From IMG/VR virus record IMGVR_UViG_3300028840_002431, positions 248,001 through 312,000 of that record: DNA of 64,000 nucleotides. The stretch is one strand, 5' to 3'. The notes beneath the pieces are model-generated. The model was not told where the DNA came from. It ran no database searches and saw only the letters and a list, made by a program, of their open reading frames with translations. Both the position numbers and the translations under genes were made by a program. Numbering within the stretch: position 1 is the first letter of the stretch; each line of letters opens with the position of its first letter. Below, piece after piece: positions 1 to 50,362 of this stretch.

Positions 1-915
1 TTTCTGGCCGACGACGAATTCCGCGAGTACACCCTCAAAGAAGCCGCGAAAGCCCTGAGAAAGCTAACCACAGAGCGAGCCAAGGAGATTGCTGCCGCTG
101 CCGAGAAGAAGACGGAAGACCTCAAGGAGGCCGCCGCTGCCCTGATGGACGGCGGCGAGATGTCGGACGAGCAAAAAGAAGCTCTCGAATCAGCGGCCAC
201 CCGCATTGGCGTCAAGGCCGGGTTCGATGCCCTGGAAGCGTCTGTGCTCTCTGGCGCGAAGTCGTTCAACAAGGGGTTGGCCAGTTATGTGGCTTCCAAA
301 GCATTAGGGCGGGCGTTGAAAAACCCAAAGGGCGTCGAAGGTCCTCCGGAGGAGGCTATCGTTCATCTCGTCGTGGGAGCCATGGGTAAGGAGATCAACG
401 GTCTTGACGACAAGGGTCTCACGGAGGTGTTAGAAAAGATGAAGCCGGAAAAGACAAAAACCAGTGCCGCTCGCGTTGCCAGCCGGTTCATAGAAGCCTC
501 CGATATACGGGTCGTGAATGTGGATTTTGTCGGAGACAGACAACCTCGCTGGGACGGCGATCCTGACTTTACCGCCGACGTTACTGTCACCTTCGACGTA
601 TCCGGCATGGCTCTGGCTCGTTTGTTCGGCAAGCAACGAAGGGTGCTGGAAGGCTTCCTCGAAAAGCTGGACGAAAAAACAGCGATCAAACGGATCGAGG
701 CTGGCGGCAGTCGCACCAGCCAAATCATGAGAGCCATCGAACCTGAGGTCAACGACCTCATCATTGACTACAACTTGAACGAGTTCGATTCTGACTCCAA
801 GGTCAGAGACTTCACACCCTCTGAGGACACATCATTCTGGGAAGCCGACATCGATCCCAGAAAGCAGAGAATCCGGTACACCATCGAGGTGGACGCGCAC
901 GGACTCTGGCAGTAG
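1..915 (+). CDS. Multi-domain hypothetical protein, 5'-truncated by the window edge; carries the internal RVASRF tag (candidate virion protein)
   Basis: Frame is open from base 1 to TAG at 913-915; KTSAARVASRFIEA (RVASRF at 472-489) separates two segments. Confidence 0.6.
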   Translation, partial: FLADDEFREYTLKEAAKALRKLTTERAKEIAAAAEKKTEDLKEAAAALMDGGEMSDEQKEALESAATRIGVKAGFDALEASVLSGAKSFNKGLASYVASKALGRALKNPKGVEGPPEEAIVHLVVGAMGKEINGLDDKGLTEVLEKMKPEKTKTSAARVASRFIEASDIRVVNVDFVGDRQPRWDGDPDFTADVTVTFDVSGMALARLFGKQRRVLEGFLEKLDEKTAIKRIEAGGSRTSQIMRAIEPEVNDLIIDYNLNEFDSDSKVRDFTPSEDTSFWEADIDPRKQRIRYTIEVDAHGLWQ

Positions 916-916
916 C

Positions 917-1819
917 TCAGGGCTGGCGCTGGAAGAACCCGGACCAGCGATCCCCAGCGGTCTCGGATGTAAAGTCCAAGGTAGCGAGAGGGGTCGAGAT
1001 CACCCCCGAAATATCGGGGGCACCGTAAACGGCTTTCCCGGTGAGGACTCTCAGGTTAGGGGCGGGTTGACACTCGCCATAACTATGAGTGTGCCCACAG
1101 AGCACCAGGATTCTATTCTCTGGGTGCTTAGCCGCCGCCGCAAGTAACATCTGACCCATGGCCTCACATGTGAACCAGGGGAGCCAACGGGAGTCAGAAA
1201 TAGCTCCTTCGTGCCAACACGCCTCTTTGAAGGGCGGGAAATGCGTGGCGAATATAACAGTCTCACGGAGTTTGAGAGCTTCCAATAGTTTGGGTTTGGC
1301 CGACTCAGCCGCCTCAACCCCCAAGGCTCTTACCTTGTCCAGAAACGCCAGCCGCCCACGGCCGCCTCTCTCTTGCCATTCGAAGCGGTTATAGAACGCG
1401 GAAAGGTCGCTGATAAGCTCGAAGTCGTTAAGGACAACATGCGATTTTTTGGGCTTTCCGATACGAGCATCAAACCACCCCTCGTGTCCTGTCAGAGCGG
1501 TCTTGTCACCCAAGAGAAAAATACCCGACCGGTCGAGCCAGGAAAGACTACCCGCAGCGGTTTCGAGTATTTCTTCTCGAACCTCCTCGAAGCTACTCTT
1601 GTAGTAGTCGTGGTTCCCCAGCGTGAAATACACTTGGCACCCGACACCTTCGGCAAACTGTTTCAGGTGCCCGGCGACGTTGTCCCCCTCACCTATGTCC
1701 CCGGTGAGCACAACTGCGTCGAACTTTCTCTCAGACGTAAGGTATCGTCCGAAAGAACGGGCGGCTCCCTTGGCGGGGAGAAAGTTCAAGTGCGGATCTG
1801 TGATCCAGAGTAGATCCAT
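917..1819 (-). CDS. Calcineurin-like metallophosphoesterase (Icc/CpdA-like)
   Basis: Motifs TDPH, TGDI, GNHD, THFPP, GHTH in canonical order. Confidence 0.9.
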   Translation of the reverse strand: MDLLWITDPHLNFLPAKGAARSFGRYLTSERKFDAVVLTGDIGEGDNVAGHLKQFAEGVGCQVYFTLGNHDYYKSSFEEVREEILETAAGSLSWLDRSGIFLLGDKTALTGHEGWFDARIGKPKKSHVVLNDFELISDLSAFYNRFEWQERGGRGRLAFLDKVRALGVEAAESAKPKLLEALKLRETVIFATHFPPFKEACWHEGAISDSRWLPWFTCEAMGQMLLAAAAKHPENRILVLCGHTHSYGECQPAPNLRVLTGKAVYGAPDISGVISTPLATLDFTSETAGDRWSGFFQRQP

Positions 1820-1842
1820 AACGCGAGCCGTTTCGGTAGAGG

Positions 1843-2253
1843 TTAGGAGGGACGCCGGTATTCGCGGGGAGGGTCCCCACGATAGTCTCGGTCATCCCGA
1901 CGGTGATTGTTCCGTCGATGGTTTCCGCCGCCATTCTTTTTACGGTAGGTATTCTCGCGTGGCTCCTGGCCGTCCAGGTGGATGATAACCTTCCGGCCGT
2001 CAAGATAGGCCGATTTGCCGAACAGATGAATTATGGCGTTCAAGGTCTGCCGGTTGCGGCCTATGACATGGCCACGGTCATCAGGATCAACAGTCAACGT
2101 CAAAAGCGTCACTGCCTTGCCACGAGCAACGTCAACTGACACCTTCTCTGGTTTGCGGACGATGGAACGTGCGAGTTCGAGCAGAAGTTCCTCTTCTGTT
2201 AGGACGAGGCTTTCTGAATCGGTGCTTATTGTTTCGGATTCGTTAGTCGGCAT
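1843..2253 (-). CDS. khpA: KH-domain RNA-binding protein, KhpA (UPF0109/YlqC) family
   Basis: ELARSIVRKPEKVSV...LTVDPDDRGHVIGRNRQTLNAI matches the KhpA pattern; basic/acidic C-terminal tail. Confidence 0.75.
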   Translation of the reverse strand: MPTNESETISTDSESLVLTEEELLLELARSIVRKPEKVSVDVARGKAVTLLTLTVDPDDRGHVIGRNRQTLNAIIHLFGKSAYLDGRKVIIHLDGQEPRENTYRKKNGGGNHRRNNHRRDDRDYRGDPPREYRRPS

Positions 2254-3523: not shown

Positions 3524-4738
3524 ATGACGAAAGCGACCGCACTGATGAAGTTTCTTTCCCAGGCCGCCAAACGGCTTGGGGTTGCCGACCACGTGTACAT
3601 CGTTGGAGGGGCGGTCAGAAACTACCTCATGGGTATCGCCCCCAAAGACGTGGACATGGTCATCGACTCCCTGGCTCTGGGCCGGGGAAGGGACTCTGAG
3701 TGGTTCGCAAAGAAGCTCCAAAGGGTAATCCCAGCCAGGACGAGCCTCACGACCAACCAGTACGGGGTAGCCATCCTGACGGTTGCCGACTCCTGGGAAC
3801 TGGGCGGCCACGACATGAAAGGGGAGGTGTTGGAAATCGCCAACGCCCGTAAGGAGTCGTATGGAGGCCCAGAGGGCAAAGGCTACAAACCCCACACAGT
3901 GGAACCGGCGACCATCGAAGAGGACCTCCTGAGGCGGGAGTTCACATTCAACACCCTGTTGTGGCGGCTTCTGGATCTCGAACACGGTGCCGAGAGAGCC
4001 GAAGTCATCGACCTCCTTGGCCGGGGACGCAAGGATCTGGAAGAACGACTGCTAACCACGCCTGTCGATCCGGACAAGACGTTCTCCGACGACCCTACCC
4101 GGATGCTCAGGGCCATCAAGTTCGTGGCCAAGTATGGGTTCAAGATCCCACCGGACGTGAAGGCAAGCATCCAGAGGAACGCCGGGAAGCTTTTGCGGAT
4201 GCCATGGGACGCCGTTCGTAAGATTCTGATTGAGGATATCCTCGAAGGCCCGGCTCCCCGTAAAAGCGTGAAGCTGTTACACGACCTTGGGTTGGGAGAG
4301 GTTCTCAAGGACATGCTCCAAAAGGAATCCGGTTTCGCGGCGGCGTTAACCCGGAGCCTGAGCGAGAAGGAAATCCATCTGGTCCTGGATCTTCTCGACC
4401 TGGGTTGGACCATGAAGACGCCGGTATCCTTCTTGGACGCGAAAGGGTTGAGACGCCTCCGAGAAATCCTACTGTCGAATGCGAACGACCCGGCCTTCGA
4501 GAAACGGTTCCTGGCCTCCTTGAAGAAGCCTCCCATTGATCAGGTACGCCTCTTCGAGACCTATCAGTTGAAAGGCCAGGATCGAGGTGAGGTCGCACAG
4601 TTAGCCCGTGCCGCTCTCTTGGAAGAACCGGAGCTTGCTGAGAAGCCGTCAGAGTTGGAGCGGCATGTTGAAGAGGCGGTCGAGAAGAGATTCAAACGTA
4701 CGGCACGGATCGTGAAGAGATACCTCAGGAGTCTGTAG
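3524..4738 (+). CDS. Class II tRNA nucleotidyltransferase (CCA-adding/poly(A) polymerase family), no HD domain
   Basis: YIVGGAVRN, KDVD, EDLLRREFTFN, FSDDPTRMLRAIKF; RBS GAGGA. Confidence 0.9.
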   Translation: MTKATALMKFLSQAAKRLGVADHVYIVGGAVRNYLMGIAPKDVDMVIDSLALGRGRDSEWFAKKLQRVIPARTSLTTNQYGVAILTVADSWELGGHDMKGEVLEIANARKESYGGPEGKGYKPHTVEPATIEEDLLRREFTFNTLLWRLLDLEHGAERAEVIDLLGRGRKDLEERLLTTPVDPDKTFSDDPTRMLRAIKFVAKYGFKIPPDVKASIQRNAGKLLRMPWDAVRKILIEDILEGPAPRKSVKLLHDLGLGEVLKDMLQKESGFAAALTRSLSEKEIHLVLDLLDLGWTMKTPVSFLDAKGLRRLREILLSNANDPAFEKRFLASLKKPPIDQVRLFETYQLKGQDRGEVAQLARAALLEEPELAEKPSELERHVEEAVEKRFKRTARIVKRYLRSL

Positions 4739-6850: not shown

Positions 6851-7185
6851 TTCACATCCTTGACACAATCGAAGAAGTTGAGGGAGGGCTTCACGGGTTT
6901 GGTTGGTTTCCGTCCGCGTCGTAAAACCATACCGTCTTCGAACGGGACGGTTTCCTCTCTGTAGACCACGTACCAGTTCCGTTTTTTCTGGTAAACGTGA
7001 AAGCCGAGTCCGAACTGCTCGCTCGTTTCGTTCATACGCTTTTTCGTCGTGGTTGTCTTATGCCCACCGGAATCCAAGACTATACGCTTGTAGTTGAAAC
7101 CAACGACTCTCGTTCCATGGTAAATGACGTTTGTTGAGTTCTCGTCCGTGTAAACCTGAGTCCCGGTTTTTCCTATGGTCATCAC
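6847..7185 (-). CDS. Hypothetical phage protein
   Basis: Coupled to the kinase stop; GHKTTTTKKRMN motif; ends SLNFFDCVKDVK. Confidence 0.6.
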   Translation of the reverse strand: MMTIGKTGTQVYTDENSTNVIYHGTRVVGFNYKRIVLDSGGHKTTTTKKRMNETSEQFGLGFHVYQKKRNWYVVYREETVPFEDGMVLRRGRKPTKPVKPSLNFFDCVKDVK

Positions 7186-8093
7186 ACCGCTCGCTCAGGC
7201 ATCGGGAACGGTCGGTACTTGCGTTTGCCTATGGCTCGTTTGAGCACGCCATCGAACTCCTCGTGGGCGTCCCATGCGTCCTGTGGGCGTTTGGAGGGTA
7301 CCGACCAGAGACAGGTCTTTAAGAAATCTCGAACGAGCTTGGGGACAGAGTCCGACATCTGGTTGGTCGAGACATTACCCCCAACCAGCGCAACGGCACA
7401 TTTGGCAGCCATGTAGATGTCTGTAGCAGCGGTGGGGGTCTCCTTGGCCAGAATCTCCGGAGCGTAGAAATCCTTGTAAGGAGCGCTGATCGCTTTCACG
7501 TGCGGGTTCGAGAGAAAGGTGTCATCCGTCAGGTAGTCGTATAACGTCGGACCCTTCTTGGCTTTCGCCTTCTTGGGTGTGATGTCCACGGCATAGGACC
7601 AGTCGATGATCTTGGCCCCGTGGTCGGTTGGATGGATCAGCACGTGGGGCGGTATCAGAGCACCATGCACAATGCGATTCGTGTGAGCGAACCCTATGCC
7701 ATGCAGGATACGGTTGAACATCCACACCATATCCCGGAAGTCGATCCCATCTGGAAAAGCCTCCAACACTTCCGCGAGCGAGCGGTGCTCATTGAACCAA
7801 GGCAGGATGTTGACTCGCCGTTGGGACGGGACCAGGAACGAATCTAACACCCGTGGGAGAAAACGGTAAAACTTCTCGTCCTTGGCCGTCGGCGGGTACA
7901 ACCTTCCCAGGATCTTGGCTTCGTTCTCAACAAGATCATTGTCTGCGCTTTGTTTGACCACTTTGAAAACTACCGGGTACTCGTTGGTCCCGTTGAACAC
8001 TACGCAGTTATAAACGTCGCAGATGTCTCCCGACGCGAGTTTGTCAGTGAGGACGTACTTCTTGTTCTTGTGTTCGATCGCTATCGGTTCCAT
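7182..8093 (-). CDS. Ser/Thr protein kinase-like protein (atypical catalytic loop)
   Basis: LASGDICDVY, VFKV, NEAKIL, IVHGALIPPHVLI, IIDWS, YAPE, TDIYMAA. Confidence 0.8.
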   Translation of the reverse strand: MEPIAIEHKNKKYVLTDKLASGDICDVYNCVVFNGTNEYPVVFKVVKQSADNDLVENEAKILGRLYPPTAKDEKFYRFLPRVLDSFLVPSQRRVNILPWFNEHRSLAEVLEAFPDGIDFRDMVWMFNRILHGIGFAHTNRIVHGALIPPHVLIHPTDHGAKIIDWSYAVDITPKKAKAKKGPTLYDYLTDDTFLSNPHVKAISAPYKDFYAPEILAKETPTAATDIYMAAKCAVALVGGNVSTNQMSDSVPKLVRDFLKTCLWSVPSKRPQDAWDAHEEFDGVLKRAIGKRKYRPFPMPERAV

Positions 8094-9444
8094 GTCTTTC
8101 TTCTTCCCGAGGCCACGGGGTCTTGTCTTCGTATGTGGGTCCGGTTGAGCACAGTGTTACAGGTGTCTTGAGTTCTTGCGCTATATCGTCCAGGAAAGCG
8201 CTTCTGTCAAAAAGCTTCACGACCGGGATTGCGTTTTCGATCTTACGAGTTAACTCTTCTTGCTTGTCGAGATTGGGTTCTAGCCCTCGAAGGCAGCCGT
8301 AGAGATCCAGACGCTGTTGGACCGGCAGTTTGGTAATAGAGACGCCTTTTTCTAACACATAACCTACACACACTGACGGCCGGTCCGTTACTCTCAATTT
8401 ATCGAGGTTGGTGATCACCAATTCATCTACACCACCGATAACTTCAAGGGCGTATCTGGCCAGGACCATGTCGAAGTGCCCCAGGCGGAAGCTCTGTTGC
8501 CACTCGCCGTATTTGTTGTGTGTATCCGTGGCGTACTCTGTACAATTTCCGGCCGCGTCCTTGTCATGGACCTCCGTTGGGAAGGGGCCAGCGCCGTGCC
8601 TTGTCATGTAGGCGCGTAGAATTCCCATCCTACGTACCGGCCCGTTGAAATCTCCGAGTAGTTCGTAGGCGTTGTTGAAGGTTATGTCGGAGCGCGTGAC
8701 GTAAGGGAAGAAACCGTAATCCTGGTCCAACAAGACCCCCTGCGCTCCCTCGAAGATAACGGTCGAATCCCGCGACAACCGGAATTCTAACCAGTTGCGA
8801 TCGACGATGTTAATCTTGCAGCCAAAGGCGTGATACCGCACCGCGTAGTAAGACAATGCCGCTTCATCCCGGAGCAAGAGCAGGTTGGGGTCCCCGGCAT
8901 CAATGTCACACCCCTCGAACTCCTTCAGTTTCAGGTTTCGCGAGAAACGCAACTTCTCGTGAACCTTATCCCGATTCGGGAGATCCCCGATCCTCAGTGC
9001 CATGTCAGGATGCTCCAAGGCGTCCTTGGCTGTTTCTCCGATACCCATTCCGCAAGATCCGTGACGCTTGTTTCGAATGGTCTCTCGTAACCGGTTGGCG
9101 GCCACCTGATAGACGTTCGTTACCAGGGCTTCGCCTTCGACGAACAAGACGTTGTAGGGAGAGTGGCCAAGGGCCACAAGAGCTTGGACCTCCTCCTCCA
9201 AGGCGAGCGGGTTGACCATCATGTATCGGCTCAAGAGAGTGTCCGCCCCGGCCAGCGTCCCGCTACCAAACTGTGCAAACGTGTGGTGAGTTCCGTTGGG
9301 GAGAACGACGTTGTGAGCGGCTTGAGCACCTCCACAGTATCTGACTACCAGTTTGGAATGGTAGAGGCGGGTCAGGTAATCGACGATGGAGCCTTTGCCC
9401 TCATCCCCGAAACCCAACCCGGCTATGAGGATCACCTTTGCCAC
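8044..9444 (-). CDS. Adenylosuccinate synthetase-like protein (divergent PurA family)
   Basis: GLGFGDEGKG, GGAQAAH, GSCGMGIG, FEGAQGVLLD..FPYVTRS, AYMTRHGAGPFPTE; GTG start overlaps the NAMPT stop (TAGTG). Confidence 0.88.
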   Translation of the reverse strand: MAKVILIAGLGFGDEGKGSIVDYLTRLYHSKLVVRYCGGAQAAHNVVLPNGTHHTFAQFGSGTLAGADTLLSRYMMVNPLALEEEVQALVALGHSPYNVLFVEGEALVTNVYQVAANRLRETIRNKRHGSCGMGIGETAKDALEHPDMALRIGDLPNRDKVHEKLRFSRNLKLKEFEGCDIDAGDPNLLLLRDEAALSYYAVRYHAFGCKINIVDRNWLEFRLSRDSTVIFEGAQGVLLDQDYGFFPYVTRSDITFNNAYELLGDFNGPVRRMGILRAYMTRHGAGPFPTEVHDKDAAGNCTEYATDTHNKYGEWQQSFRLGHFDMVLARYALEVIGGVDELVITNLDKLRVTDRPSVCVGYVLEKGVSITKLPVQQRLDLYGCLRGLEPNLDKQEELTRKIENAIPVVKLFDRSAFLDDIAQELKTPVTLCSTGPTYEDKTPWPREEERHGTDSDRTQEQEVRPH

Positions 9445-10844: not shown

Positions 10845-11757
10845 GGCTTCTCCTTATTGCGCGGGTTGCGATATCCAACAGTTCGGAATGGCTGTCGGCG
10901 TAGTCGTATTGCTCTAACCGGTCGATATTGACCCAGAGACATTCGTCCAGATCGTCGTTGCCCTTGGCCGATCCGAAGACGTATTTGGCCAGATACAACG
11001 TGGTGAACATGGCGTAGCCAGGGGCGTCCCGCGCCACCACTCGAATCTGAGACAGGGGCGTGAAACCAGCGGCCTCGATACCGGTCTCTTCCAAAAGCTC
11101 ACGTTTGGCGGCGGCTTCTCCCCCGGCGTCGTCGGCATTGATATGGCCGCCTGGGAGCCTCAAGATACCGCCCTCCCGTTCACGCCTACCGAGTAGGACC
11201 TCAATCCCGCCGTCTTCCGTCGGCCGCCACACACAGATATCCACGACCGGGTCACAGCGGGCAAACTGGTTTGTCGCGCCGTAGATGACACCTCTACGAA
11301 AAGCCTCCGACACCTCCTGGCTACGTCCCGCTTCTAACCGCAGTTCGGTTGCCGACACATGCGGGATCTCTTCGATCTCCCGAACCTGGAAAGGGCCATG
11401 ATACCCGCTTTGAAGCGACTTCTTGGAGTTAGGACGGCCGCAGTAGATCACCACGTCATCCGTGGGGAACATGATGTTGATAAGTTGGTTGAGGTGTTTG
11501 GTCCAGCGCTCGTCTGTCGGTTGGTCGGGGAGCGGTACGACCACAGCACGCGGGTACTCCTCCTTGATCATCTGCTCACGCGCTTGGTAATCCAGGGGGT
11601 CTCGCGGCGTTCCGATAACCCGACTGACACCGACGCAGACCAGTAACTTGCTGTGGTTCCCGGCTGTGTTGAGCAACGCTCTGTGCCCCTCAGTCAACCT
11701 GTGGCACTGGAAACGTCCAATAACAACTCCGACGCTGGCTTTTCTCTTTTCGCTCAT
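10828..11757 (-). CDS. nadM: Bifunctional NMN adenylyltransferase / ADP-ribose pyrophosphatase (NadM-Nudix)
   Basis: IGRFQ...TEGH and SATELR in the N-terminal domain; Nudix box GGHINADDAGGEAAAKRELLEETG. Confidence 0.9.
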   Translation of the reverse strand: MSEKRKASVGVVIGRFQCHRLTEGHRALLNTAGNHSKLLVCVGVSRVIGTPRDPLDYQAREQMIKEEYPRAVVVPLPDQPTDERWTKHLNQLINIMFPTDDVVIYCGRPNSKKSLQSGYHGPFQVREIEEIPHVSATELRLEAGRSQEVSEAFRRGVIYGATNQFARCDPVVDICVWRPTEDGGIEVLLGRREREGGILRLPGGHINADDAGGEAAAKRELLEETGIEAAGFTPLSQIRVVARDAPGYAMFTTLYLAKYVFGSAKGNDDLDECLWVNIDRLEQYDYADSHSELLDIATRAIRRSHATNT

Positions 11758-11772
11758 GTTTCCTGGAGAGAT

Positions 11773-11798
11773 GGGGAGGGGGCCGGAACCCCCTCCCC
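11773..11798. other. GC-rich intergenic hairpin between the vWA gene and nadM
   Basis: GGGGAGGGGG-ccggaa-CCCCCTCCCC, 10-bp perfect stem with no U-tract on the coding strand (stabiliser or attenuator?). Confidence 0.6.
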
Positions 11799-11811
11799 TA
11801 TGGGTTAGGGT

Positions 11812-12792: not shown

Positions 12793-12794
12793 TG

Positions 12795-20856: not shown

Positions 20857-21357
20857 ATGCCGACCAAAGAGCAGAAGAGAAGGGCCGAAGTAAAAAAGAA
20901 GAAGGCCGAAGCCGAAGCCCAGCATCTGGACGTAGCTGTTAAAACGGTGAACTACTGGCTCCAGCGTGCCAGGGCCGACGGCCGGGAAGAGTTCGTTGTG
21001 ACTGTGGAGCCGATGCGCCTGATTCTGGCCGCTCTCGAAAAGGAACTGGACGCCCTCAAGGACTGGAAGCGCGAGGCCAAGAAGAAAAAGAAGGCTCTCA
21101 AGCAACTGTCCGGTTGCGTCTCGTCTTTCCTGGTCTCCCTGGACACCCTCATGAACGAACCGGAGTCCTACGAGAGAGGCCGTAAATTCGCCCGAATTGC
21201 TAACACCCTGGACAGGGCCAATGATGAAGCCCGGTATTTCGAGCTAGGGGTGGACCACCGGAAAGACGAGAAAAAGCATGATCCTCTTGTAAGCTCGCAG
21301 GGGTATGAAGCTTGCCGAACGTGTGGCTGCCCGGTACCGGGAAGCGATAATTCGTAA
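20857..21357 (+). CDS. Hypothetical protein
   Basis: ORF immediately after rtcB. Confidence 0.5.
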   Translation: MPTKEQKRRAEVKKKKAEAEAQHLDVAVKTVNYWLQRARADGREEFVVTVEPMRLILAALEKELDALKDWKREAKKKKKALKQLSGCVSSFLVSLDTLMNEPESYERGRKFARIANTLDRANDEARYFELGVDHRKDEKKHDPLVSSQGYEACRTCGCPVPGSDNS

Positions 21358-22987: not shown

Positions 22988-23561
22988 GCCGTCCCCACGC
23001 TGCGACCTGGACCGCGATTCTGTAGAAAGCCGTATCGTTGACAGACGCCGTCTTACTCCCCGGCAGACTCAACGGGAACTTGACGACAAGGCGGCCCGTA
23101 CCACGATTGGAACCCCACAGGACGAGTTCGTGAGCACCCCACGTTATTTCGGGGATGTCCAGGTCCACTTTTGTTTCCTCGTCGGGGGAGTAGGCCAGGG
23201 TCGTGTGAGGCTTGTAATCCGGGAACTTCTTATCGTAAGGGATCGCCGCTCTGTCCAGGGCCTCGCAGAGTTTCTCGCGGAACTCATGTAAGGGAGGGGA
23301 CTCAATTTCAGCGATTACAGGAACCCCGTCTTCTCCCGCTGGGAAGTTAGATATGTGGTTGGTTGAGACGGAGAAGGGAATTGTCTTTGAAACCACGTCG
23401 AAAATAACCGGGACTGCCTTTCCTACCCGCTCGATAGGAATATCTTTCCCGAGATAGATGATCGTGATGTGCGGGTCCTCTTTTTCGGAATCTCCTGGTA
23501 CAGGAACTTCTCTTAGAACCCTTGCAGTCTCCTCAGGCACCTGTAGCATCAACGCGGCCAT
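22971..23561 (-). CDS. 2H phosphoesterase (LigT/Acb1-like)
   Basis: Two HxT motifs: PHITIIYLG and KPHTTLAY. Confidence 0.85.
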   Translation of the reverse strand: MAALMLQVPEETARVLREVPVPGDSEKEDPHITIIYLGKDIPIERVGKAVPVIFDVVSKTIPFSVSTNHISNFPAGEDGVPVIAEIESPPLHEFREKLCEALDRAAIPYDKKFPDYKPHTTLAYSPDEETKVDLDIPEITWGAHELVLWGSNRGTGRLVVKFPLSLPGSKTASVNDTAFYRIAVQVAAWGRRDRYA

Positions 23562-34440: not shown

Positions 34441-35091
34441 ATGATTAGTGACGTTCTGTCCGACGCTATCCACGCGATCAAAGAGTATAGAAGGCACCCT
34501 GGAACGAGGGATGCGTACTCAGACCCTAAGATCTCTCGAAAAATTGACCGGGTCGTGAAAGTCATGGACGACCTTAGGAGTGAACTCGACACCCCTCCTC
34601 GTATCGCGAGTTATGATCGCCGGGCGTCAACTCCAGGTGTCCGCGAACGCCAAAGAGCCAAGAAGGACTTAGTCAATGCCTTATTCACCCAATACCCGAA
34701 CGTCCCCAAGAAAGAGCTTGGTAAGCTCGTGGATTCAGCAATTAGCGGCGTGGGATACAAGGCGAAAGAACTCAACAAGCGAAAGTCAGCGTCGGAACGG
34801 GTGGCCCGCCAATCCGGAAGGGAGATTTTCTACTCCATCGTTCCTGAGAGGCAAGCCGTTCGGCTTTATGACAAGTTGGAGAAAGAAGACGAACAGTCGG
34901 CCCAACTGTTTCTAGACGTGATCCAGGAGCTTCAAGACCAGTTGGACATCAGTCCCGGAGCGGAGTCGGCCCTGAGCAGAATCCGCAACGTGGTGGATAA
35001 GGGGTCAAGTTGGGACGCAGCACTCATTCGGAACAATGTGTTCAAGGCAGCCAACTCGTTGGGTATGAAGCTGCCGTCTCACATGTTCTAA
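34441..35091 (+). CDS. Multi-segment hypothetical protein (candidate virion protein)
   Basis: RBS GGAGAGG; junctions PRIASYDRRA and KSASERVARQSG. Confidence 0.6.
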   Translation: MISDVLSDAIHAIKEYRRHPGTRDAYSDPKISRKIDRVVKVMDDLRSELDTPPRIASYDRRASTPGVRERQRAKKDLVNALFTQYPNVPKKELGKLVDSAISGVGYKAKELNKRKSASERVARQSGREIFYSIVPERQAVRLYDKLEKEDEQSAQLFLDVIQELQDQLDISPGAESALSRIRNVVDKGSSWDAALIRNNVFKAANSLGMKLPSHMF

Positions 35092-35101
35092 GGGGTTATC
35101 C

Positions 35102-35659
35102 ATGAGTGAATATGACAAGATGATCGCGGAGTTAGAAGATGAGTTTCCGAAGTTCCGGCTCATAGAGAAGAAAGATAGCTTCATGATGAAAGCTATCGAC
35201 ATCTTTCTCAAGGTCATCACCTTCTGGAAGATGAAAAGCTTCATGACCAAGTTCACAACCACGGTTGGTTATCTAGTGTACACACCATCCGGCTGGGGAA
35301 AGATGGACAAGGTCGGAATACTAGACCACGAGCGCGACCACATGAGAAGGATGCGTAAGGTCGGCCGGATCTGGTTCACCATCTCCTACCTTGCCGTGTG
35401 GTTCCCTGTGGGGCTTGCCTACTACCGAAAAGAATACGAGCAGTCGGCGTATGAAATAACCATGCGTCGTGTTGCGAAAAGATTCGGAATAGAGACGATC
35501 GAGGGCGACGCATACAAGAACCACATGATCAAGCGCTTCACTGGCCCGAAGTACGTATGGACGTGGCCGTTCCGAAAAGACATGGAAAAGTGGTACGACG
35601 GGGCTGTCAAAAAGATCAGGTTGGAGATGGGCCTTCCGCCGAAGGACAAAGCTGCCTGA
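35102..35659 (+). CDS. Putative HExxH metallopeptidase-like membrane protein
   Basis: ILDHERDH, hydrophobic segment, YEQSAY. Confidence 0.55.
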   Translation: MSEYDKMIAELEDEFPKFRLIEKKDSFMMKAIDIFLKVITFWKMKSFMTKFTTTVGYLVYTPSGWGKMDKVGILDHERDHMRRMRKVGRIWFTISYLAVWFPVGLAYYRKEYEQSAYEITMRRVAKRFGIETIEGDAYKNHMIKRFTGPKYVWTWPFRKDMEKWYDGAVKKIRLEMGLPPKDKAA

Positions 35660-37855: not shown

Positions 37856-39094
37856 CTCTTCGGGTGCCCCACCGCAGTCTTCACACAACTCGTGGATGAT
37901 AATTTTGTTGGGGCCGCTGCAACGGCATTGGCTGACGACCGTCCCGCAGCTAGGACAAATGACTGTGTAGTGGTCGCCCGGCCCCACGTCGTCCATGGTC
38001 TTTGGCGCAGAAGCGAGCCTGATGGCAAGTCCAAAAGCGCCCAACTTGTCGATAATGGAGCCGTCTTTCAAATAGTTCTCGGCAAGACCCGGCACGAGAT
38101 ATTGACTCTTGAGAGTGGACGCCTCGTGGCCCACGGCTTCGGCCGTCTCTTCTAACGCCTTCTTGAACTCTTCTTTGAGCTTGGCCTTCCGTTTCTTGGG
38201 GTCGCTGGGCAACGCTCCTTTCCGGGCCGCTTTGAGGCGCTTACGCATCTCGTCATTCGCGTGGTAGCCACGGATATCCTTGGACGTTACCTCAAACGGT
38301 TTCAGGTAGGCGTTGACCTTGTCGGCTGTTACTTTGCCGCCATCCCAAGCCAGGATGTTAGAATCGCCCCCGTCCATGTCGTCATAGGCTTGCCGAAGAG
38401 CTTTCTGGATCGCCTTATCCGCGACCTTCTTCTCCTGTTTGACCCCGGACTTTCCCACGTACTTGATGAACGCCCCGTCCGGCTTGAAGCTTACCTGACT
38501 CCGTTTCCAACCCGTGACCCCGTAGTGCCCGTCTTTGGCTGACTGGTCATTCCCGATTCTCTCGTATGTGTGGTCCATGAGCGCCACAGCGAGAGCAGTG
38601 CGAGCCGTTTCCGGGTTGCTCGACTTCATGTCCTTCTTGACCTTGGCCCTAATCCGTCTGATAGCCCGGCCTAGCTTTTGTAACCGTTCCGCCTTCTTGC
38701 GGTTCCGGTCAGCTATCTGACGCTCCGAGTAGACGTAGACCGTGGTCTTGCCGCCATTCTCAGACTTGACTTCTTTCTTCTGTTTGTACTTACCGGTCAG
38801 GTACCTCTCGACGACGCCTTTCTTTTTCTTGAGGGCCGCCTCTTCCATCGCCATCGCTTCTGGCACCTTGTCGGGCGACATCTTACGAATCGTATAGAGG
38901 CCCATGGTCCGATTCTTCTTACGCCCCTTGGGAATCGGCTGAAGCTCGATCTTTGGGTTCCCTTTCTCGTCCAGGAACATACGAACGATCTTACCCCGCT
39001 TGTTCTTGAATTTGCCGAAGAGGATATATTCCCCCGGCTTGAAGTAAGCGGTCAGGTAGCGCGTCGCGACCCGGTGTGTGAGAGGTTCACCCAT
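37850..39094 (-). CDS. DNA topoisomerase IB (bacterial/poxvirus-like core) with extra N- and C-terminal modules
   Basis: ERIGN..YGVT, YVGKSG, KDIRGYHAN, VGH..STLKSQY (catalytic Tyr). Confidence 0.88.
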   Translation of the reverse strand: MGEPLTHRVATRYLTAYFKPGEYILFGKFKNKRGKIVRMFLDEKGNPKIELQPIPKGRKKNRTMGLYTIRKMSPDKVPEAMAMEEAALKKKKGVVERYLTGKYKQKKEVKSENGGKTTVYVYSERQIADRNRKKAERLQKLGRAIRRIRAKVKKDMKSSNPETARTALAVALMDHTYERIGNDQSAKDGHYGVTGWKRSQVSFKPDGAFIKYVGKSGVKQEKKVADKAIQKALRQAYDDMDGGDSNILAWDGGKVTADKVNAYLKPFEVTSKDIRGYHANDEMRKRLKAARKGALPSDPKKRKAKLKEEFKKALEETAEAVGHEASTLKSQYLVPGLAENYLKDGSIIDKLGAFGLAIRLASAPKTMDDVGPGDHYTVICPSCGTVVSQCRCSGPNKIIIHELCEDCGGAPEEF

Positions 39095-45735: not shown

Positions 45736-47373
45736 TTATTTCCGGGTCTTGGGTTTATAACCCCTCCGGGTCGGCTCGACCTTGAAGCCGAACTTCTTAC
45801 CCACCTTGGCCAGGGCTGCAAGGGTCGCTCTCTCGGAAGTGTCAACATCGCCGCCTTCATCGAGCGGGAACTGCACGTCAACACGGGTCTCGCGCTTCCA
45901 ACCCATCTTCTCCTGTTGATAGGTCAGCGGTCCGGAGTACACGTTGTTCAAGACCTTGAGATTCACATCGTGGACGTTACCGTCGTCGGCAACCACGGGA
46001 ATCGTTGTACGATTGATGACCCTGATGGTGTCGATGTTGAAAGGAACGGGCTTGCGGCCCTCAACAAACAGAACACTCATCCGGTCAGTCGCGTAGCTGA
46101 AGCCGCCGACCTTCTCCAAGAAGCGACCGACGACCGACCCGGCTGATTTGAACTTGTCCTTGTTCTTCTCGTTTTCTTCACGCCATTTCTTGGCGTCTTC
46201 GGGACTCATGTTCTTCGTTGGGTCGGCTGGCTTACCCTCTTCAAACCGGCCGATCATCCCCTCATCCGCCGTTTCAGCGGCGGCCTTCAAACCTTTTTCT
46301 CTCATACTCTCCTCACGACGAGCTACGAAACGGTCCCAGTCATGCAGACGGTTACTAACGGTCAACGCCATCTCGGGGAAGGTGGCCCGGCCGCCGCTCT
46401 TGTTAGAGTCGAAGTGTGTCCACCGTCCGCCGTCTGACATGCGGACGAAATCCCGAAAACTCCAGGTCAGCTTCAAGGTATCGGTACCGCCGTATACCTT
46501 GTCCGTGATGGAGACCTCCTGTCTGAAATCGTAATCTGCCCAGTCGCTACGGCCTGAGCCATAGACCGGCGTCGGCTTCCCCAGCTTCACGTTGAACCCA
46601 AGATCCTCGAACTCGGGCAGACTGGCGCGTTCGAAACCCACCAAACGCCTCACAAGACGCTTAGCCGCCTCGTTGATGATATCGTTGATCTCTTCGAGTT
46701 CTCTTTGGTACTGCGGGAGGATGTGCTCGTGGAAGCCCTCCTCTTCCGAACGCCTCTGATACTCTTCGTCTCTGGAGTCAGTTACCCAGTCCACCTTCGT
46801 TCGCTGGGACACCATGCGATCGATTAGCTTGCAGTCCTTTGTCTCAACGGACTTGAACTGCGGGGCAGCGGCGTCCTTCTTGAATTTATCTTTGTTCTTC
46901 TGGTGCTCCTCACGCCACTTTTTGGCGTCCTCAGGACTCATATTCTTCGTAGGGTCAGCGGGTTTCCCTTCTTCGAAGCGAGAAACGACCTCTTCGCTCG
47001 ACGTGTCGGTCATGCCGGACTCCTTCGCGTAGCGCTCCCAACTTCTGGAGTAGACTTCTTCGTCATCGACTTCCATCTCGAACTTACGCCAAGCGTCTTC
47101 GGCCTTCTTGCCTACCATGAAAGTCTTGGTTCGCGGCCAGTACAACACGAGATCGCCGCGTTTAAACGGTGTCCCGTCGTCTGCCTTACCTGGGTATCTG
47201 GCGTGTATCCAACGGGGGTCGCCTTTGACGTAGCGAGCGCTCTTGAATTTATCCCCGTGCTCCTCGTTCATCTCCCGCCACTTGGCGGCCTGTTCGGCGC
47301 TCATGTTCTGAGTCGGGTCAGCGGGCTTACCCTTCTCGAACTTGGAGACTACGTTTTCCCTGGCATTAGGCAT
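45736..47373 (-). CDS. Repeat-punctuated multi-domain protein (candidate virion polyprotein)
   Basis: Three FE(K/E)GKPADPT(Q/K)NMS.E.A.KWRE...DKFK repeats. Confidence 0.75.
   Translation of the reverse strand: MPNARENVVSKFEKGKPADPTQNMSAEQAAKWREMNEEHGDKFKSARYVKGDPRWIHARYPGKADDGTPFKRGDLVLYWPRTKTFMVGKKAEDAWRKFEMEVDDEEVYSRSWERYAKESGMTDTSSEEVVSRFEEGKPADPTKNMSPEDAKKWREEHQKNKDKFKKDAAAPQFKSVETKDCKLIDRMVSQRTKVDWVTDSRDEEYQRRSEEEGFHEHILPQYQRELEEINDIINEAAKRLVRRLVGFERASLPEFEDLGFNVKLGKPTPVYGSGRSDWADYDFRQEVSITDKVYGGTDTLKLTWSFRDFVRMSDGGRWTHFDSNKSGGRATFPEMALTVSNRLHDWDRFVARREESMREKGLKAAAETADEGMIGRFEEGKPADPTKNMSPEDAKKWREENEKNKDKFKSAGSVVGRFLEKVGGFSYATDRMSVLFVEGRKPVPFNIDTIRVINRTTIPVVADDGNVHDVNLKVLNNVYSGPLTYQQEKMGWKRETRVDVQFPLDEGGDVDTSERATLAALAKVGKKFGFKVEPTRRGYKPKTRK
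46141..47352 (-). repeat. Three dispersed ~39-codon repeats: 47236-47352, 46870-46989, 46141-46257
   Basis: Near-identical peptides separated by unrelated domains. Confidence 0.85.
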
Positions 47374-47376: not shown

Positions 47377-48066
47377 TCACCGCCACTGCGAGAAATGGGT
47401 TTCCCAGTTGATCTTGTTCTTCCGGAACCAGTCAGTGAGGTTCCCCCAAGATACGTTCTTCAAGGCAGTAGGGTCGGCCTTGAGAATCTTGTACAGCTTA
47501 CGGGCCGACGCCGGGGCCGTGGACTCGTACATCGTGTAGTGCGGGTCGGCTTGCTGGAAATCAGACTTGGGGTCGTAGACCTTGAAGCTGGTCCACCTTG
47601 CGTGAAGAGTGAAATCCTTGCCCTTGGCTTCGATCGGGTCCGTGTCCTCAGGCTCGATCTTGAGAAAGTGCTCGGTGAACTCGTCCCATCTCGGCTCTTT
47701 CTTGATCCACTCGAAGTGCTCTTTTTTATCCGGCTCCTGCTTCTCGTAGGCTATGTCGGCGGCAGTCCTCAGGGCCTCAGTGAGCTTGTCCTTCACCCGG
47801 TCGTAGTTGTCGGACCGGCTTAGCTTGGCATCGTCCAGGACGTTCTCCGGGATGAAAGAGGAGAAGCCGTGCCAACCCCTGTCCATGAAGGTGCTCGCGG
47901 TAGATACCCGAAGCTTCTTTTTACCCTTCTGGGGCATCTCTTCCAAACGCCATACGTTACGGTTCCACCGAAGGCGGCAATCGCGGCCTAGGAACTTGCC
48001 GTCCCAACTGCCATAACGACCGGTCCTGCTTTGGAATCGAGTCAAAATCTGTTGCGCGTCAATCAT
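47377..48066 (-). CDS. Hypothetical protein, N-terminal QILTRFQSRTG (candidate virion protein)
   Basis: RBS GAGG; same block as the repeat protein. Confidence 0.6.
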   Translation of the reverse strand: MIDAQQILTRFQSRTGRYGSWDGKFLGRDCRLRWNRNVWRLEEMPQKGKKKLRVSTASTFMDRGWHGFSSFIPENVLDDAKLSRSDNYDRVKDKLTEALRTAADIAYEKQEPDKKEHFEWIKKEPRWDEFTEHFLKIEPEDTDPIEAKGKDFTLHARWTSFKVYDPKSDFQQADPHYTMYESTAPASARKLYKILKADPTALKNVSWGNLTDWFRKNKINWETHFSQWR

Positions 48067-48071
48067 AAGCC

Positions 48072-48479
48072 TCACCCTAACACCACGGTCACGTCGTACT
48101 TTTCGAGGGGGTCCTCAAGAGTCCCCGCTCCCGCCGCCGTGATGGTACCGTGGATGATTTGTTCCCTGCCCCTCTCGTTGACGTAGGGGATCTCGATTCG
48201 CCACACCTTTGAGCTAGGCATCTTTGGCCGGGGTATCGTCCGCGACCACTCGTAGTCAGCCCGCTTTATTTCATACGGGATATCGTGATTCCTGAAAATC
48301 TTGAAGATCTCGTGAACGGGCTTCCAGTACGTGTCTCGGAAAATACCGTCCGGCGTGTTGCCGATCAGCTTGTAGAGGTACCGGACCGCTTTCTGCTTCC
48401 GCATGGAATCCAGCGGGTTAGCTTCTTCCAGGGCGGATTTGTAGCGAGCTACGACCCGATCAGAGGCATTCGCGTCCAT
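48072..48479 (-). CDS. Hypothetical protein, N-terminal DRVVARYKSA (candidate virion protein)
   Basis: RVVARY at 48441-48458. Confidence 0.6.
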   Translation of the reverse strand: MDANASDRVVARYKSALEEANPLDSMRKQKAVRYLYKLIGNTPDGIFRDTYWKPVHEIFKIFRNHDIPYEIKRADYEWSRTIPRPKMPSSKVWRIEIPYVNERGREQIIHGTITAAGAGTLEDPLEKYDVTVVLG

Positions 48480-48502
48480 GCCTTACAGAAAACACAAATA
48501 CT

Positions 48503-49768
48503 CTAAGCGTTTTCCGCAGCCGCTTTTCTGACTATCAGGGCAGATCCAGGATTGGCCACCGCCTCTGCGGTGATTCGGATAGCGGAAACGTCAGGGCTGT
48601 CCGGAGCGTCGAAAGAGTAAGGTTTGAGCACGTCCTCCATGATGGTCCTGAGCGCCCTGGCTCCGGTCTCACGCTTCTGGGCCAATTTGGCGATATCCCT
48701 AAGCGCTTCTTCTTCGAATTGAAGGTCGATGCCGTCAAGGGAGAACATGGCCCTGAATTGCTTGCAGATGGCGTTCTTCGGCTCAATGAGAATGCGAATC
48801 AACTCGTCTTCTGTCAGTTCGTAGGTCGATGTTAGAATCGGGAACCGGCCGACGGTCTCCGGTATCAGACCGAACTCCAGGACATCCTCAACTGTGATGT
48901 TCTTGTAGATATCGGTCTTGTCCCGTTCTTGGGCGTGTTCCCTTCCGAACCCGATGCCCGTCGAAGCGTTGAGACGATTATCAACAAGCTCCTCGATTCC
49001 GGCGAACGACCCGGCCGCTATGAAAAGGATGTTGGTCGTGTCGATGACATCGACAGGGGAAACCCCGGAAACCGCTCTCGTCCCGTGCCCCCGTGGGACC
49101 GGAACCTGATGGCCTTCCACGAGCTTGAGCAACGCCTGTTGCACACCCTCACCGGTTACGTCTCGATACCCGGAGGGACTACGGCCCGATTTGCGGGCGA
49201 GCTTGTCGAACTCGTCCAGAAAGATGATACCCCACTCGCACCGCTCGATGTTCTGTTGGGCGTCCGCAAACAAGCCTTGAAGGATGGATTCGGGGTCGTC
49301 TCCGACGTACCCAGCTTGGGTCAGTCTGTTACAATCGGCCACGTAGAAGGGGACATCTAACGCTCTTGCGATCGCTCTGGCGATCAGGGTCTTACCAGAT
49401 CCGGACGGGCCGGGGAGTAATATGTTAGATTTCTCGATCTCGACCCTTTCACCTTCTAACACTACCCCGCCATTCTTACTCACTTCCCGACGGCGGAAAT
49501 GCTTGTAGATGGCTATGGCCATATCCCGCTTGGCGGCCTCCTGTCCGATGACAATCTCGTCCAGTAAAGCCATGATTTCACGAGGCTTTTTCAGCGGTAC
49601 GTTGGAAGTGGACTCGGCCTTTCGCTCGACTTCCGCGATAGCCCTGGACGCCTCCTCGATGCAACCCTCGCAGATGTGCGGGCCGTCCGTAGCGCCCACG
49701 AGATGGTTGACCTCGTTTCGGGGACGGTCACAAAAATCACACTTCTTCTTAGGGTCCTTATCGGCCAT
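48503..49768 (-). CDS. clpX: ATP-dependent Clp protease ATP-binding subunit ClpX
   Basis: C4 zinc domain, IGQEAAK, KSNILLPGPSGSGKT, GYVG, FLDEFDK, RDVTGEGVQQALLK, IGF loop; promoter motif at 49778-49789. Confidence 0.95.
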   Translation of the reverse strand: MADKDPKKKCDFCDRPRNEVNHLVGATDGPHICEGCIEEASRAIAEVERKAESTSNVPLKKPREIMALLDEIVIGQEAAKRDMAIAIYKHFRRREVSKNGGVVLEGERVEIEKSNILLPGPSGSGKTLIARAIARALDVPFYVADCNRLTQAGYVGDDPESILQGLFADAQQNIERCEWGIIFLDEFDKLARKSGRSPSGYRDVTGEGVQQALLKLVEGHQVPVPRGHGTRAVSGVSPVDVIDTTNILFIAAGSFAGIEELVDNRLNASTGIGFGREHAQERDKTDIYKNITVEDVLEFGLIPETVGRFPILTSTYELTEDELIRILIEPKNAICKQFRAMFSLDGIDLQFEEEALRDIAKLAQKRETGARALRTIMEDVLKPYSFDAPDSPDVSAIRITAEAVANPGSALIVRKAAAENA

Positions 49769-49792
49769 GACCCTAATATATTACACCGGAAA

Positions 49793-50362
49793 CTAGGGTG
49801 TCAACCACAAACCCAAAGACTGCAAAAGAGCTTTAGCAGCCTTGTATAGCTTCTCGACCAAACTTACGAGCGGTCCCACATCGTTGGCTCTCTCCGCCAT
49901 TTTTATAAAAGAACTGGAACCTACAAAACTTAGCTGTTCGACGACTTTTTCATCAAGCCCTACCCGACCCGTTCCGATTCTCTTTTGCATGACGGCGGTG
50001 TCTCTGTCGTTCAGATCGGTTTTGAACTCGTTGATTGCCTTCTTCCACTCTCCTTCACGTACGTTATCGTCGAAATCCCCAAACGTCACATCACGCAAGG
50101 TAAACCGGTCCCCAAACTGTCCCCGTTTCGCCTTGGCGATTCTGTCCCACTTGTTCCTGATCTGTCGATCGGCGGACAACCAAATCAAATAGCCCCAACT
50201 GTTGTACGGTAGCAGGTGGGTGTCGATAAAAGTCGATGGGATGTGTAAGGATTCCAGATACCCCGGCCCCCAATAGCGATCGGGAGGAGGTCCCCGCCAT
50301 TCTTCAACCCGCGCTTCTCTATGAAACCCCTCAACATAACGTTTGACGACGTTGTGTTTCAT
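49793..50362 (-). CDS. Hypothetical protein, N-terminal NVVKRY..REA (candidate virion protein)
   Basis: RBS GGAG before MKHNVV; ATGA overlap with the nitrilase stop. Confidence 0.55.
   Translation of the reverse strand: MKHNVVKRYVEGFHREARVEEWRGPPPDRYWGPGYLESLHIPSTFIDTHLLPYNSWGYLIWLSADRQIRNKWDRIAKAKRGQFGDRFTLRDVTFGDFDDNVREGEWKKAINEFKTDLNDRDTAVMQKRIGTGRVGLDEKVVEQLSFVGSSSFIKMAERANDVGPLVSLVEKLYKAAKALLQSLGLWLTP

Follow-up and report, generated by a model that had tools for sequence, protein, structure and literature searches.

Tag copies and their carriers in the 64-kb window

The analysed stretch of DNA (64,000 nucleotides, hereafter "the window") corresponds to bases 248,001-312,000 of a 416,539-bp IMG/VR contig. 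Its genes include a topoisomerase IB, a CCA-type nucleotidyltransferase, a 2H phosphoesterase and a phage clpX, and the tagged genes sit among replication, RNA-repair and NAD genes. The window and about 50 kb of its flanks hold no structural gene, and searches for the head module of the same contig did not find it. The initial annotation described a short basic peptide shared by about nine unrelated proteins of this region, and every peptide it listed was found in the window at, or within a few bases of, the positions it gave. The observation is therefore confirmed. In the following list, L002, L003 and L267 are loci of related phages, and PSSM denotes the score against a position-specific matrix of the tag:

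466..498 (+), strong tag AARVASRFIEA (PSSM 23.8), internal at about residue 221 of a 368-aa gene that begins upstream of the window
4697..4726 (+), C-terminal tag RTARIVKRYL, 4 residues before the stop of the CCA-type nucleotidyltransferase (3524-4738)
21314..21346 (+), N-terminal tag AERVAARYREA (PSSM 24.8) of the 122-aa ORF 21305-21673
22995..23021 (-), very weak C-terminal RIAVQVAAW of the 2H phosphoesterase (22971-23561), which does not match the motif here; in L267 a stand-alone 2H gene next to the portal gene ends in the canonical HRVAARYLAEIRRLSE
34783..34818 (+), weak item KSASERVARQSG, which lacks the aromatic residue but lies exactly at a module boundary, since residues 137-228 occur as separate small genes near the terminase gene in relatives
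35465..35494 (+), strong tag RRVAKRFGIE (PSSM 19.0) in ORF 35102-35659, directly after Met121
38792..38818 (-), second, tag-like element GVVERYLTG about 30 residues before the topoisomerase IB catalytic domain
39047..39079 (-), N-terminal tag THRVATRYLTA (PSSM 26.4) of the topoisomerase IB gene (37850-39094), followed by a predicted SH3/Tudor/KOW-like barrel
46105..47355 (-), four tag variants (NVVSKF, EVVSRF, MIGRF and SVVGRFLEKVG) in the 545-aa repeat protein (45736-47373); three open a 40-aa KPADPTKNMSPEDAKKW repeat, and the fourth precedes a C-terminal domain that is a separate, N-terminally tagged gene in L002 and L003
48019..48051 (-), decayed N-terminal tag QILTRFQSRTG of the 232-aa protein (47377-48075), whose orthologue in L002 has the canonical ERVVARFQGRTG
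48432..48461 (-), N-terminal tag DRVVARYKSA (PSSM 27.3) of the 135-aa protein encoded directly after clpX; most orthologues keep it
48503..49768 (-), phage clpX (zinc finger, GYVG, IGF loop; RKH loop replaced), flanked on both sides by tagged genes
50312..50353 (-), weak N-terminal tag NVVKRYVEGFHREA of the ORF directly upstream of clpX, with the likely start Met28 at 50362

Several details of the initial annotation were corrected. AERVAARYREA (MKLAERVAARYREA) is the N-terminus of ORF 21305-21673 and not the C-terminus of the ORF upstream, whereas ORF 145-915 is only the 3' part of the 368-aa gene, so that its tag is internal. NVVKRY most likely lies 4 residues after the real start (Met28 of ORF 49793-50443, with GGAG upstream). 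The strong copy RRVAKRFGIE had been missed, while KSASERVARQSG, MIGRF and RIAVQVAAW do not fit the motif on their own.

Enrichment, consensus and predicted structure of the motif

In order to assess whether the motif exceeds chance expectation, we compared the 94 ORF products of the window (20,587 aa) with 300 residue shuffles. The pattern R[VI][AV].R[YF] was observed 6 times against 0.13 +/- 0.35 expected, and [VI][AV].[RK][YF] 12 times against 3.2, with 0 of 300 shuffles reaching the observed value in either case. The loosest form, [VILM][VAIGL].[RK][YF], occurred 26 times against 14, so about half of the loose matches are chance. While these patterns were defined after seeing the data, independent data confirm them: PSSM hits of 16 or more occur at 0.02-0.10 per kb in related phage loci, at about 0.001 per kb in reversed-sequence controls (0-1 hits where real sequence gives 15-35), and 0 times in 676 kb of unrelated phage clpX loci. 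The motif is also conserved in orthologues and sits at fixed offsets. A chance or composition effect of an Arg/Val/Ala-rich proteome, which might be suggested by the loosest pattern and by some weak examples, is thus virtually excluded.

Over 81 non-redundant strong copies from the window's own and related loci, the consensus is [LSM]-A-x-R-V-A-[AS]-R-[YF]-L-x-A, with 33 N-terminal, 13 C-terminal and 35 internal copies. Positions -2 and -1 were not part of the scoring matrix, yet they are conserved too (L 38%, A 41%). All 4 hits to one strict DNA pattern that fall in contigs over 390 kb are N-terminal tags. The codons of the motif differ synonymously between copies, so selection acts on the peptide and not on the DNA. 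Non-homologous proteins of related huge phages carry the motif as well, and the carrier proteins show no similarity outside the tag, apart from a shared 40-aa KPADP repeat.

The tag is a portable add-on, as had been proposed. The closest orthologues of the CCA enzyme (76-77% identical) lack the C-terminal tag, while a 49%-identical one has its own, VRVAQRFARLSSQH, so that the CCA tag is present in two separate lineages. In the AlphaFold model of the 135-aa protein, the tag lies in a low-confidence helix (residues 3-17) apart from the domain at residues 28-135; in both models examined it is a terminal helix of low to moderate confidence.

Giant proteins of relatives and the clpX neighbourhood

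Next, we investigated where the modules of the window occur in a large family of related phages. Topoisomerase IB, the CCA-type nucleotidyltransferase, the 2H phosphoesterase and an SH3-like barrel are found there as domains of giant proteins of 1,000-2,800 aa, or as small genes beside them. These genes lie downstream of the large terminase (TerL), between the portal (phrog_16240) and head maturation protease (phrog_18299) genes, and the major head protein (phrog_2522) follows downstream. The giant proteins L170, L162, L172 and L168 (named after their loci) contain Topoisom_I, PolyA_pol, RNA ligase, InPase and a peptidase-like domain. Window proteins have homologues inside those giant ORFs, with 55 hits for the topoisomerase catalytic part, 22 for tag plus barrel and 14 for 2H, plus clpX-flanking families. 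Tags sit at the N-termini, junctions and C-termini of the giant proteins, and in TerL-centred loci 18 of 26 same-strand tags fall 4-12 kb downstream of the TerL start, which is the portal-to-protease interval. The tag core lies at -26 to -31 of the topoisomerase catalytic domain in 18 of 35 related giant proteins, against 0.8 expected, although this element could simply be part of that enzyme family.

The initial annotation further proposed that the prohead protease cuts after a small-residue site (xxA/G) following the tag. This has no support, because the protease, scaffold-like protein and major head protein of the relatives carry no tag-like site. A related possibility is that the tag is mainly a processing signal, at which the head protease or a peptidase associated with the giant proteins would release the modules, tags on stand-alone genes being leftovers of former fusions. 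In line with this, 35 of 81 copies are internal and those checked lie at module boundaries; modules fused in one phage are separate tagged genes in another; a peptidase-like domain occurs in L162, and a weak zincin-like hit lies next to L172; Ala is favoured three residues after the aromatic position (61%); and autoprocessing of polyvalent proteins has been proposed (Iyer et al. 2017, PMC5512222). However, 46 of 81 copies lie within about 12 residues of a protein end, where a cut achieves almost nothing, yet they are conserved across lineages whose ClpX proteins are only 51-82% identical. Together with the lack of such a site in the head proteins, this makes a mainly processing role unlikely. 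Tags retained at the extreme N- or C-terminus of stand-alone proteins argue for binding rather than mere cleavage.

The phage's own ClpX is a candidate alternative reader of the tag, which would then be a tether or degron that binds the zinc-finger N-domain, as the SspB XB peptide does, or enters the pore. Tagged proteins would be unfolded or degraded on schedule, or act as adaptors bringing host proteins to ClpXP. The zinc finger of this ClpX is of the Cys4 type, and GYVG forms its pore loop. In about 25 clpX loci of this clade (at least 50% identity), strong tags occur in about 20; all are on the clpX strand, mostly within 8 codons of an ATG and often in the gene directly before or after clpX, whereas none occurs in 55 other phage clpX loci. 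The flanking proteins are not homologous between lineages. Moreover, the ClpX of this clade has lost the RKH motif that all outgroup copies keep, and RKH loops set ClpX specificity (PMC7112951). The tag shares R-V-V/A plus a basic residue with XB, RGGRPALRVVK (PMC3983244), which binds regardless of its position in a polypeptide (PMC12373786), and ClpX reads both N- and C-terminal degrons (PMC12723719). Like the tag, these ClpX recognition signals are short basic and hydrophobic peptides.

On the other hand, the tag is also common in large contigs of the terminase-family phages (257-436 kb; loci L164/L194/L277, L177/L209 and L157/L204), none of which appears among the clade-type ClpX hits. Within clade genomes, tag density at the CCA loci (7 in 63 kb) equals that at the clpX loci (0.095 per kb), so only the immediate-neighbour pattern remains, and since synteny is conserved over the whole region, adjacency may be inherited. 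The loss of RKH and the presence of the tag are one clade-level coincidence. The similarity to XB covers only 3-4 residues, and XB binds as a strand, whereas the tag is predicted to be helical. While not excluded, a role of the tag in ClpX recognition, for which binding would have to be assumed, therefore appears unlikely.

Possible function and comparison with known systems

Taken together, we propose that the tag is a short linear docking peptide, a basic amphipathic helix of about ten residues that hangs off folded domains and works at an N-terminus, a C-terminus or between domains. In this view, it marks the phage's set of accessory "polyvalent-protein" modules, namely topoisomerase IB, CCA enzyme, 2H phosphoesterase, an SH3-like barrel and many unknowns. 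In related phages these are strung together in one giant protein encoded between the portal and head-protease genes, whereas in this 416-kb phage they would have become separate genes scattered through the genome, each keeping its own tag. The most likely job of the tag would be to bind a component of the assembling head, so that these proteins are packaged and enter the host with the DNA. The analysis itself establishes the motif, its enrichment, its conservation at the peptide level, its add-on nature and the homology of its carriers to head-module giant proteins; that the giant proteins and the stand-alone carriers are packaged, and that the tag is what gets them in, is inferred. The virion-cargo interpretation of the initial annotation is thus partly supported: the three enzymes it named are virion-context genes in relatives, but this is support by context only, without virion data for any of these phages, and the proposed cut by the head protease is not supported. 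We regard the capsid-targeting reading as the best available but tentative, since no receptor is identified and some giant proteins carry several tags, more than targeting alone needs.

Alternatively, the tag could dock to some other common partner unrelated to the capsid, such as nucleic acid (most known carriers act on DNA or RNA ends), the conserved AAA+ ATPase encoded three genes upstream of clpX (53905-55452), a J-protein/Hsp70 system, or a replication or repair factory. Identified carriers include topoisomerase IB, the CCA enzyme, 2H, RNA-ligase-containing proteins and a Tudor/KOW-like barrel; the tag has two invariant arginines and runs into a lysine tract before topoisomerase IB; a DnaJ gene, like the AAA protein, is encoded nearby; and the motif acts independently of position, like hub-binding motifs. 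However, many carriers have no known link to nucleic acids, nothing ties the tag to any particular partner, and this reading does not explain why the carriers are the head-module giant-protein modules. We therefore consider it doubtful.

The giant proteins of the relatives fit the description of polyvalent proteins of phages and conjugative elements (Iyer, Burroughs, Anand, de Souza and Aravind 2017, PMC5512222), as they combine many unrelated enzymatic domains, including InPase and a peptidase-like domain, and are encoded beside the portal gene. Such proteins are predicted to be packaged and delivered with the DNA, although for most of them packaging is itself a prediction. In the window, by contrast, the modules are separate genes far from any head gene found. 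No mention of a shared delimiting or addressing peptide was found in that study, as far as a term search rather than a full reading can tell.

The capsid targeting sequence (CTS) of the T4 internal proteins IPI-III and Alt (Mullaney and Black 1996, cited in PMC10052503) is likewise a short, portable peptide shared by otherwise unrelated proteins, and directs them into the prohead so that they are injected with the DNA. However, the T4 CTS is strictly N-terminal and ends in the prohead-protease consensus, which the T4 head proteins share, whereas the present tag also occurs at C-termini and between domains, has an unrelated sequence and is absent from the relatives' protease, scaffold-like and major head proteins, so that the parallel fails at this point. 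The giant phages SPN3US, phiKZ and 201phi2-1 package tens of proteins, a subset of which have N-terminal segments removed by the prohead protease (PMC10052503, PMC7411985), while no cleavage evidence exists for the tag.

Finally, the cargo-loading peptides of encapsulins and the C-terminal targeting tail of the HK97 protease are terminal peptides that dock cargo to the inside of an HK97-fold shell and are reported to be transferable to foreign proteins (Sutter et al. 2008; Duda, Oh and Hendrix 2013). Their sequences differ from the tag, and they sit on one or a few cargo proteins encoded next to the shell gene, whereas the tag is on dozens of modules. The head protease of the relatives ends in a different conserved peptide, TL[IM]RLGxL[IL]S.

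Gene content of the window and its flanks

In order to place the tagged proteins in their genomic context, we first annotated the 64 kb of IMG/VR contig UViG_3300028840_002431 (416,539 bp; bases 248,001-312,000), which belongs to a huge phage without a close relative in GenBank phages. Neither megablast nor a search with the 135-aa tagged protein returned a relative there; topoisomerase IB found only LR745208, and an AAA protein gave only distant mycobacteriophage hits. The region encodes NAD salvage and nucleotide enzymes, an RNA-repair set (RtcB, a CCA-type nucleotidyltransferase, a 2H phosphoesterase and RlaP), RNase HII, Dam and topoisomerase IB, as well as a complete ClpX, two further AAA proteins, a family-A DNA polymerase and DnaB. 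Features of the window, besides the tags themselves, are:

3524-4738, 19731-20855, 22971-23561 and 32808-34088: scattered RNA-repair set of CCA-type nucleotidyltransferase, RtcB ligase, a 2H phosphoesterase that also scores on the anti-CBASS Acb1 model (E 2.6e-6) and an RlaP-type nucleotidyltransferase
7182-8093 (-), 16444-17322 (+) and 28525-29940 (+): a eukaryote-type Ser/Thr protein kinase and two radical-SAM proteins
8044-13550 (-): block of nucleotide and NAD metabolism genes with adenylosuccinate synthetase, a NAMPT-type phosphoribosyltransferase, two NUDIX proteins (one with an NrtR-like winged helix) and an unknown 326-aa gene
31825-32985 and 32808-34088 (+): two long ORFs in different frames that overlap by about 180 bases, one with an Aldolase_II hit and the other the RlaP-type nucleotidyltransferase; this may be a real overlap, a mis-set start or a frameshift
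45736-47373 (-): 545-aa protein with three copies of a 40-aa repeat (EEGKPADPTKNMSPEDAKKWREE..KDKFK)
48503-49768 (-): clpX
53905-55452: AAA protein

No structural gene was detected in the window or in about 50 kb of flanks taken from identical contigs, which instead encode DnaJ, SNF2, sugar-modification genes, an AcrVA2-like gene, patatin, PolX and many small ORFs. The phage recurs in samples of the source sediments. In the left flank (locus L062), an AcrVA2-like gene, a patatin-like phospholipase and a family-X DNA polymerase (15643-16719, 18117-18983 and 19052-19999) lie just upstream of the window, and two further N-terminally tagged genes (294 aa and 215 aa) sit among them. In the right flank (locus L065, 6869-7900 and 103-4443), a DnaJ-domain protein and an unannotated 1,446-aa protein follow the replication genes, and a cluster of glycosyltransferase, methyltransferase and epimerase genes comes next (locus L066). 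Searches with a portal profile, a TerL profile and a TerL DNA pattern did not return the window's own contig, so that its head module remains unseen.

Conservation of the peptide motif

The initial annotation had reported a short basic peptide shared by unrelated proteins, and this observation holds, as all of the peptides listed are present in the window. The strict pattern R[VI][AV]xR[YF] occurs six times in 20,587 residues against 0.13 in shuffles, an intermediate pattern 12 times against 3.2, and the loosest pattern 26 times against 14, so some of the weaker examples may be due to chance. Several placements needed correction: AERVAARYREA opens ORF 21305-21673, ORF 145-915 is the end of a 368-aa gene, NVVKRY follows a likely internal start, and one strong copy at 35465-35494 had been missed. 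A DNA or RNA signal near start codons was ruled out because the codons differ synonymously between copies. A shared domain was likewise rejected, since the carriers share nothing beyond the tag, apart from a 40-aa repeat in the clpX-proximal genes, and since the tag is outside the fold in the model of the 135-aa protein. A module related to the 40-aa repeat of the 545-aa protein, FEFPT..YLKEHPKADPKxHTV, follows the tag in several clpX-flanking genes of relatives (L002 11695, L006 13260, L080 7248), and Pfam has no family for either.

Next, we investigated whether the motif extends beyond the window. Relatives whose ClpX is 82, 66, 54 and 51% identical carry it at the N-termini of non-homologous genes, and orthologues of the 135-aa protein mostly keep it. 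A strict DNA pattern for [DE]RVAAR[YF]xxA hit IMG/VR 53 times, which is about the chance number; however, all four hits in contigs over 390 kb were tags located 3-8 residues after a start codon. Over all loci fetched, we counted 81 non-redundant strong copies, with 33 N-terminal (within 12 residues of a start codon), 13 C-terminal and 35 internal. The consensus is [LSM]-A-x-R-V-A-[AS]-R-[YF]-L-x-A, and its first two positions are conserved although they were not scored. Reversed-sequence controls gave about 0.001 hits per kb compared to 0.02-0.10 in real loci, and 676 kb of other phages' clpX loci gave none. Based on these controls, an origin by chance or composition was rejected and can be regarded as practically excluded.

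AlphaFold places the tag in a terminal helix of low to moderate confidence. In the 135-aa protein, this predicted helix is separate from an alpha/beta domain; a fold search of the 135-aa protein gave only weak NTF2-like matches with E above 0.01. In topoisomerase IB, the tag is followed by a predicted SH3/Tudor/KOW-like barrel, whose Tudor/chromo/KOW-like matches (E about 0.01) provided no functional lead. Pfam searches with ten further tagged proteins detected no families, and the ESM Atlas gave nothing usable.

Genomic context at clpX and in head modules of relatives

The gene at 48503-49768 encodes a full ClpX with a zinc finger, GYVG and an IGF loop, and it is flanked by tagged genes. In about 25 clpX loci of this clade, about 20 have strong tags on the clpX strand, often in the adjacent gene, whereas none of 55 outgroup loci does. 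All clade clpX loci belong to tag-using phages. Moreover, the ClpX of this huge-phage clade (window and loci L068-L091, L114) keeps the zinc finger, GYVG and the IGF loop but has lost the RKH specificity motif (GTRAV, GSKMI, GKMVT and similar), while all 55 other phage ClpX copies examined keep G-R-K-H/N-P or a close form; RKH loops determine specificity (PMC7112951). Compared with the known ClpX signals (XB, N-motifs 1-3, C-motifs 1-2), the tag shares only R-V-[VA] plus a basic residue with the XB tether RGGRPALRVVK, which binds wherever it sits in a chain (PMC3983244, PMC12373786). A tether or degron that would bind the N-domain or the pore of the phage's own ClpX is conceivable, but we consider it unlikely. 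Tag density at the CCA loci of the same genomes equals that at the clpX loci, so that instead of a special enrichment around clpX only the immediate-neighbour pattern survives. In addition, the tag is frequent in large contigs (257-436 kb) that do not appear among the clade-type ClpX hits, although these contigs may be incomplete.

A search for the CCA enzyme revealed that its C-terminal tag is an add-on, which is absent from the 76-77% identical orthologues and independently present in a 49% one. In other phages, the CCA domain is part of proteins of 1,000-2,800 residues. Pfam detected PolyA_pol, an intein and Topoisom_I in the giant protein of related locus L170, and DUF5661, InPase, a peptidase-like domain, Topoisom_I and RNA ligase in that of L162. 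These giants lie directly between the portal (phrog_16240) and the head maturation protease (phrog_18299), downstream of TerL (phrog_2), and are followed by a scaffold-like gene and the major head protein (phrog_2522). The uncultured 485-kb phage LR745208 likewise has topoisomerase IB right after its portal. Inteins with LAGLIDADG endonuclease domains interrupt the CCA domain of a giant head-module protein (L170 8213-16648) and the head maturation protease of a related phage (L160 18126-20807).

Tags lie at the N-termini and junctions of these giants and at the C-termini of small neighbouring genes, one of which is a stand-alone 2H enzyme next to the portal of a 618-kb phage. The tag core sits 26-31 residues before the topoisomerase domain in 18 of 35 cases, against 0.8 expected. 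Many window proteins have homologues inside these giant ORFs, namely the topoisomerase catalytic part, tag plus barrel, 2H and the C-terminal module of the 34405 protein, and so do tagged proteins that flank clpX in the related phages of loci L003 and L006. The giants are in line with the "polyvalent proteins" of Iyer et al. (PMC5512222), both in combining several unrelated domains in one polypeptide and in being encoded next to portal and terminase; that such proteins are packaged and injected is a prediction in that study for most members. In contrast, the window's own genes are single-module and far from any head gene found.

Predicted role of the tag

In our reading, the carriers are the dispersed modules of a head-module giant protein, and each kept the tag. 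A tag conserved within a dozen residues of a protein end cannot, in this view, be there merely to be cut, so it would have to bind something, and a pure processing signal appears improbable. The most economical partner would be a head component, which would make the tag a cargo address, and we put this forward only tentatively. A different hub or nucleic acid as the partner is less likely. While the motif, its enrichment and conservation as a peptide, the add-on nature of the CCA tag and the homology of carriers to the giant head-module proteins are results of the sequence analysis, the binding of the tag to a head component, the packaging of the carriers and their delivery with the DNA are inferred, given that there is no cultured relative, that no virion data exist and that the head module of the window's own phage was not retrieved. 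The interpretation in the initial annotation, which had proposed both capsid loading and a maturation cut after xxA/G, is partly supported. The cut has no support: no tag-like site (PSSM of 8-9 or more) was found in 18 head-protease homologues, or in the scaffold-like proteins and major head proteins of eight related loci.

Capsid-targeting peptides and polyvalent proteins are both known. As in the capsid targeting sequence (CTS) of T4, a short peptide is found at the N-terminus of unrelated proteins, but the T4 CTS is neither C-terminal nor internal, and it ends in the prohead-protease cleavage consensus that scaffold and major head proteins also carry. Carriers of a T4-type CTS are found in virions and the peptide suffices to package a foreign protein, whereas for the present tag packaging is only inferred. 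The comparison with encapsulin-type cargo-loading peptides, which are terminal peptides on cargo encoded beside an HK97-fold shell gene and bind the shell interior, is only an analogy; the head gene of the relatives is HK97-like by its PHROG family. What appears new is a single portable peptide shared by dozens of modules across a family of huge phages, at N-termini, C-termini and junctions, which was not found in the papers searched; a literature search for phage virion topoisomerase IB also gave nothing relevant.

If the tag is a cargo address, it would be a simple, readable code predicting from sequence alone which proteins a whole family of huge, uncultured phages injects with their DNA, here including a topoisomerase, tRNA and RNA-end repair enzymes and dozens of unknown proteins, which are likely counter-defence factors. 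It would also show how a giant head-module polyprotein can break up into scattered genes without losing delivery, and would give a ready-made peptide for loading foreign proteins into large capsids. If it is instead read by the phage's ClpX, it would be the first phage-private degradation or tethering code. A far more speculative and very unlikely possibility is that the re-specified ClpX unfolds tagged cargo and threads it into the procapsid, or hands it to the portal. Protein packaging in these huge phages would then be driven by an AAA+ motor, which would explain both the head-module origin of the carriers and their clustering around clpX.

The head maturation proteases of the terminase-family phages (L172, L189, L166, L180 and others) end in their own conserved peptide (ALGRxPTxxExxTL[IM]RLGxL[IL]S), which differs from the tag and could be the protease's own capsid-targeting tail. 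Finally, most of the window genes checked lack a recognisable Shine-Dalgarno sequence upstream of the start codon, which hints at a host with weak use of SD.
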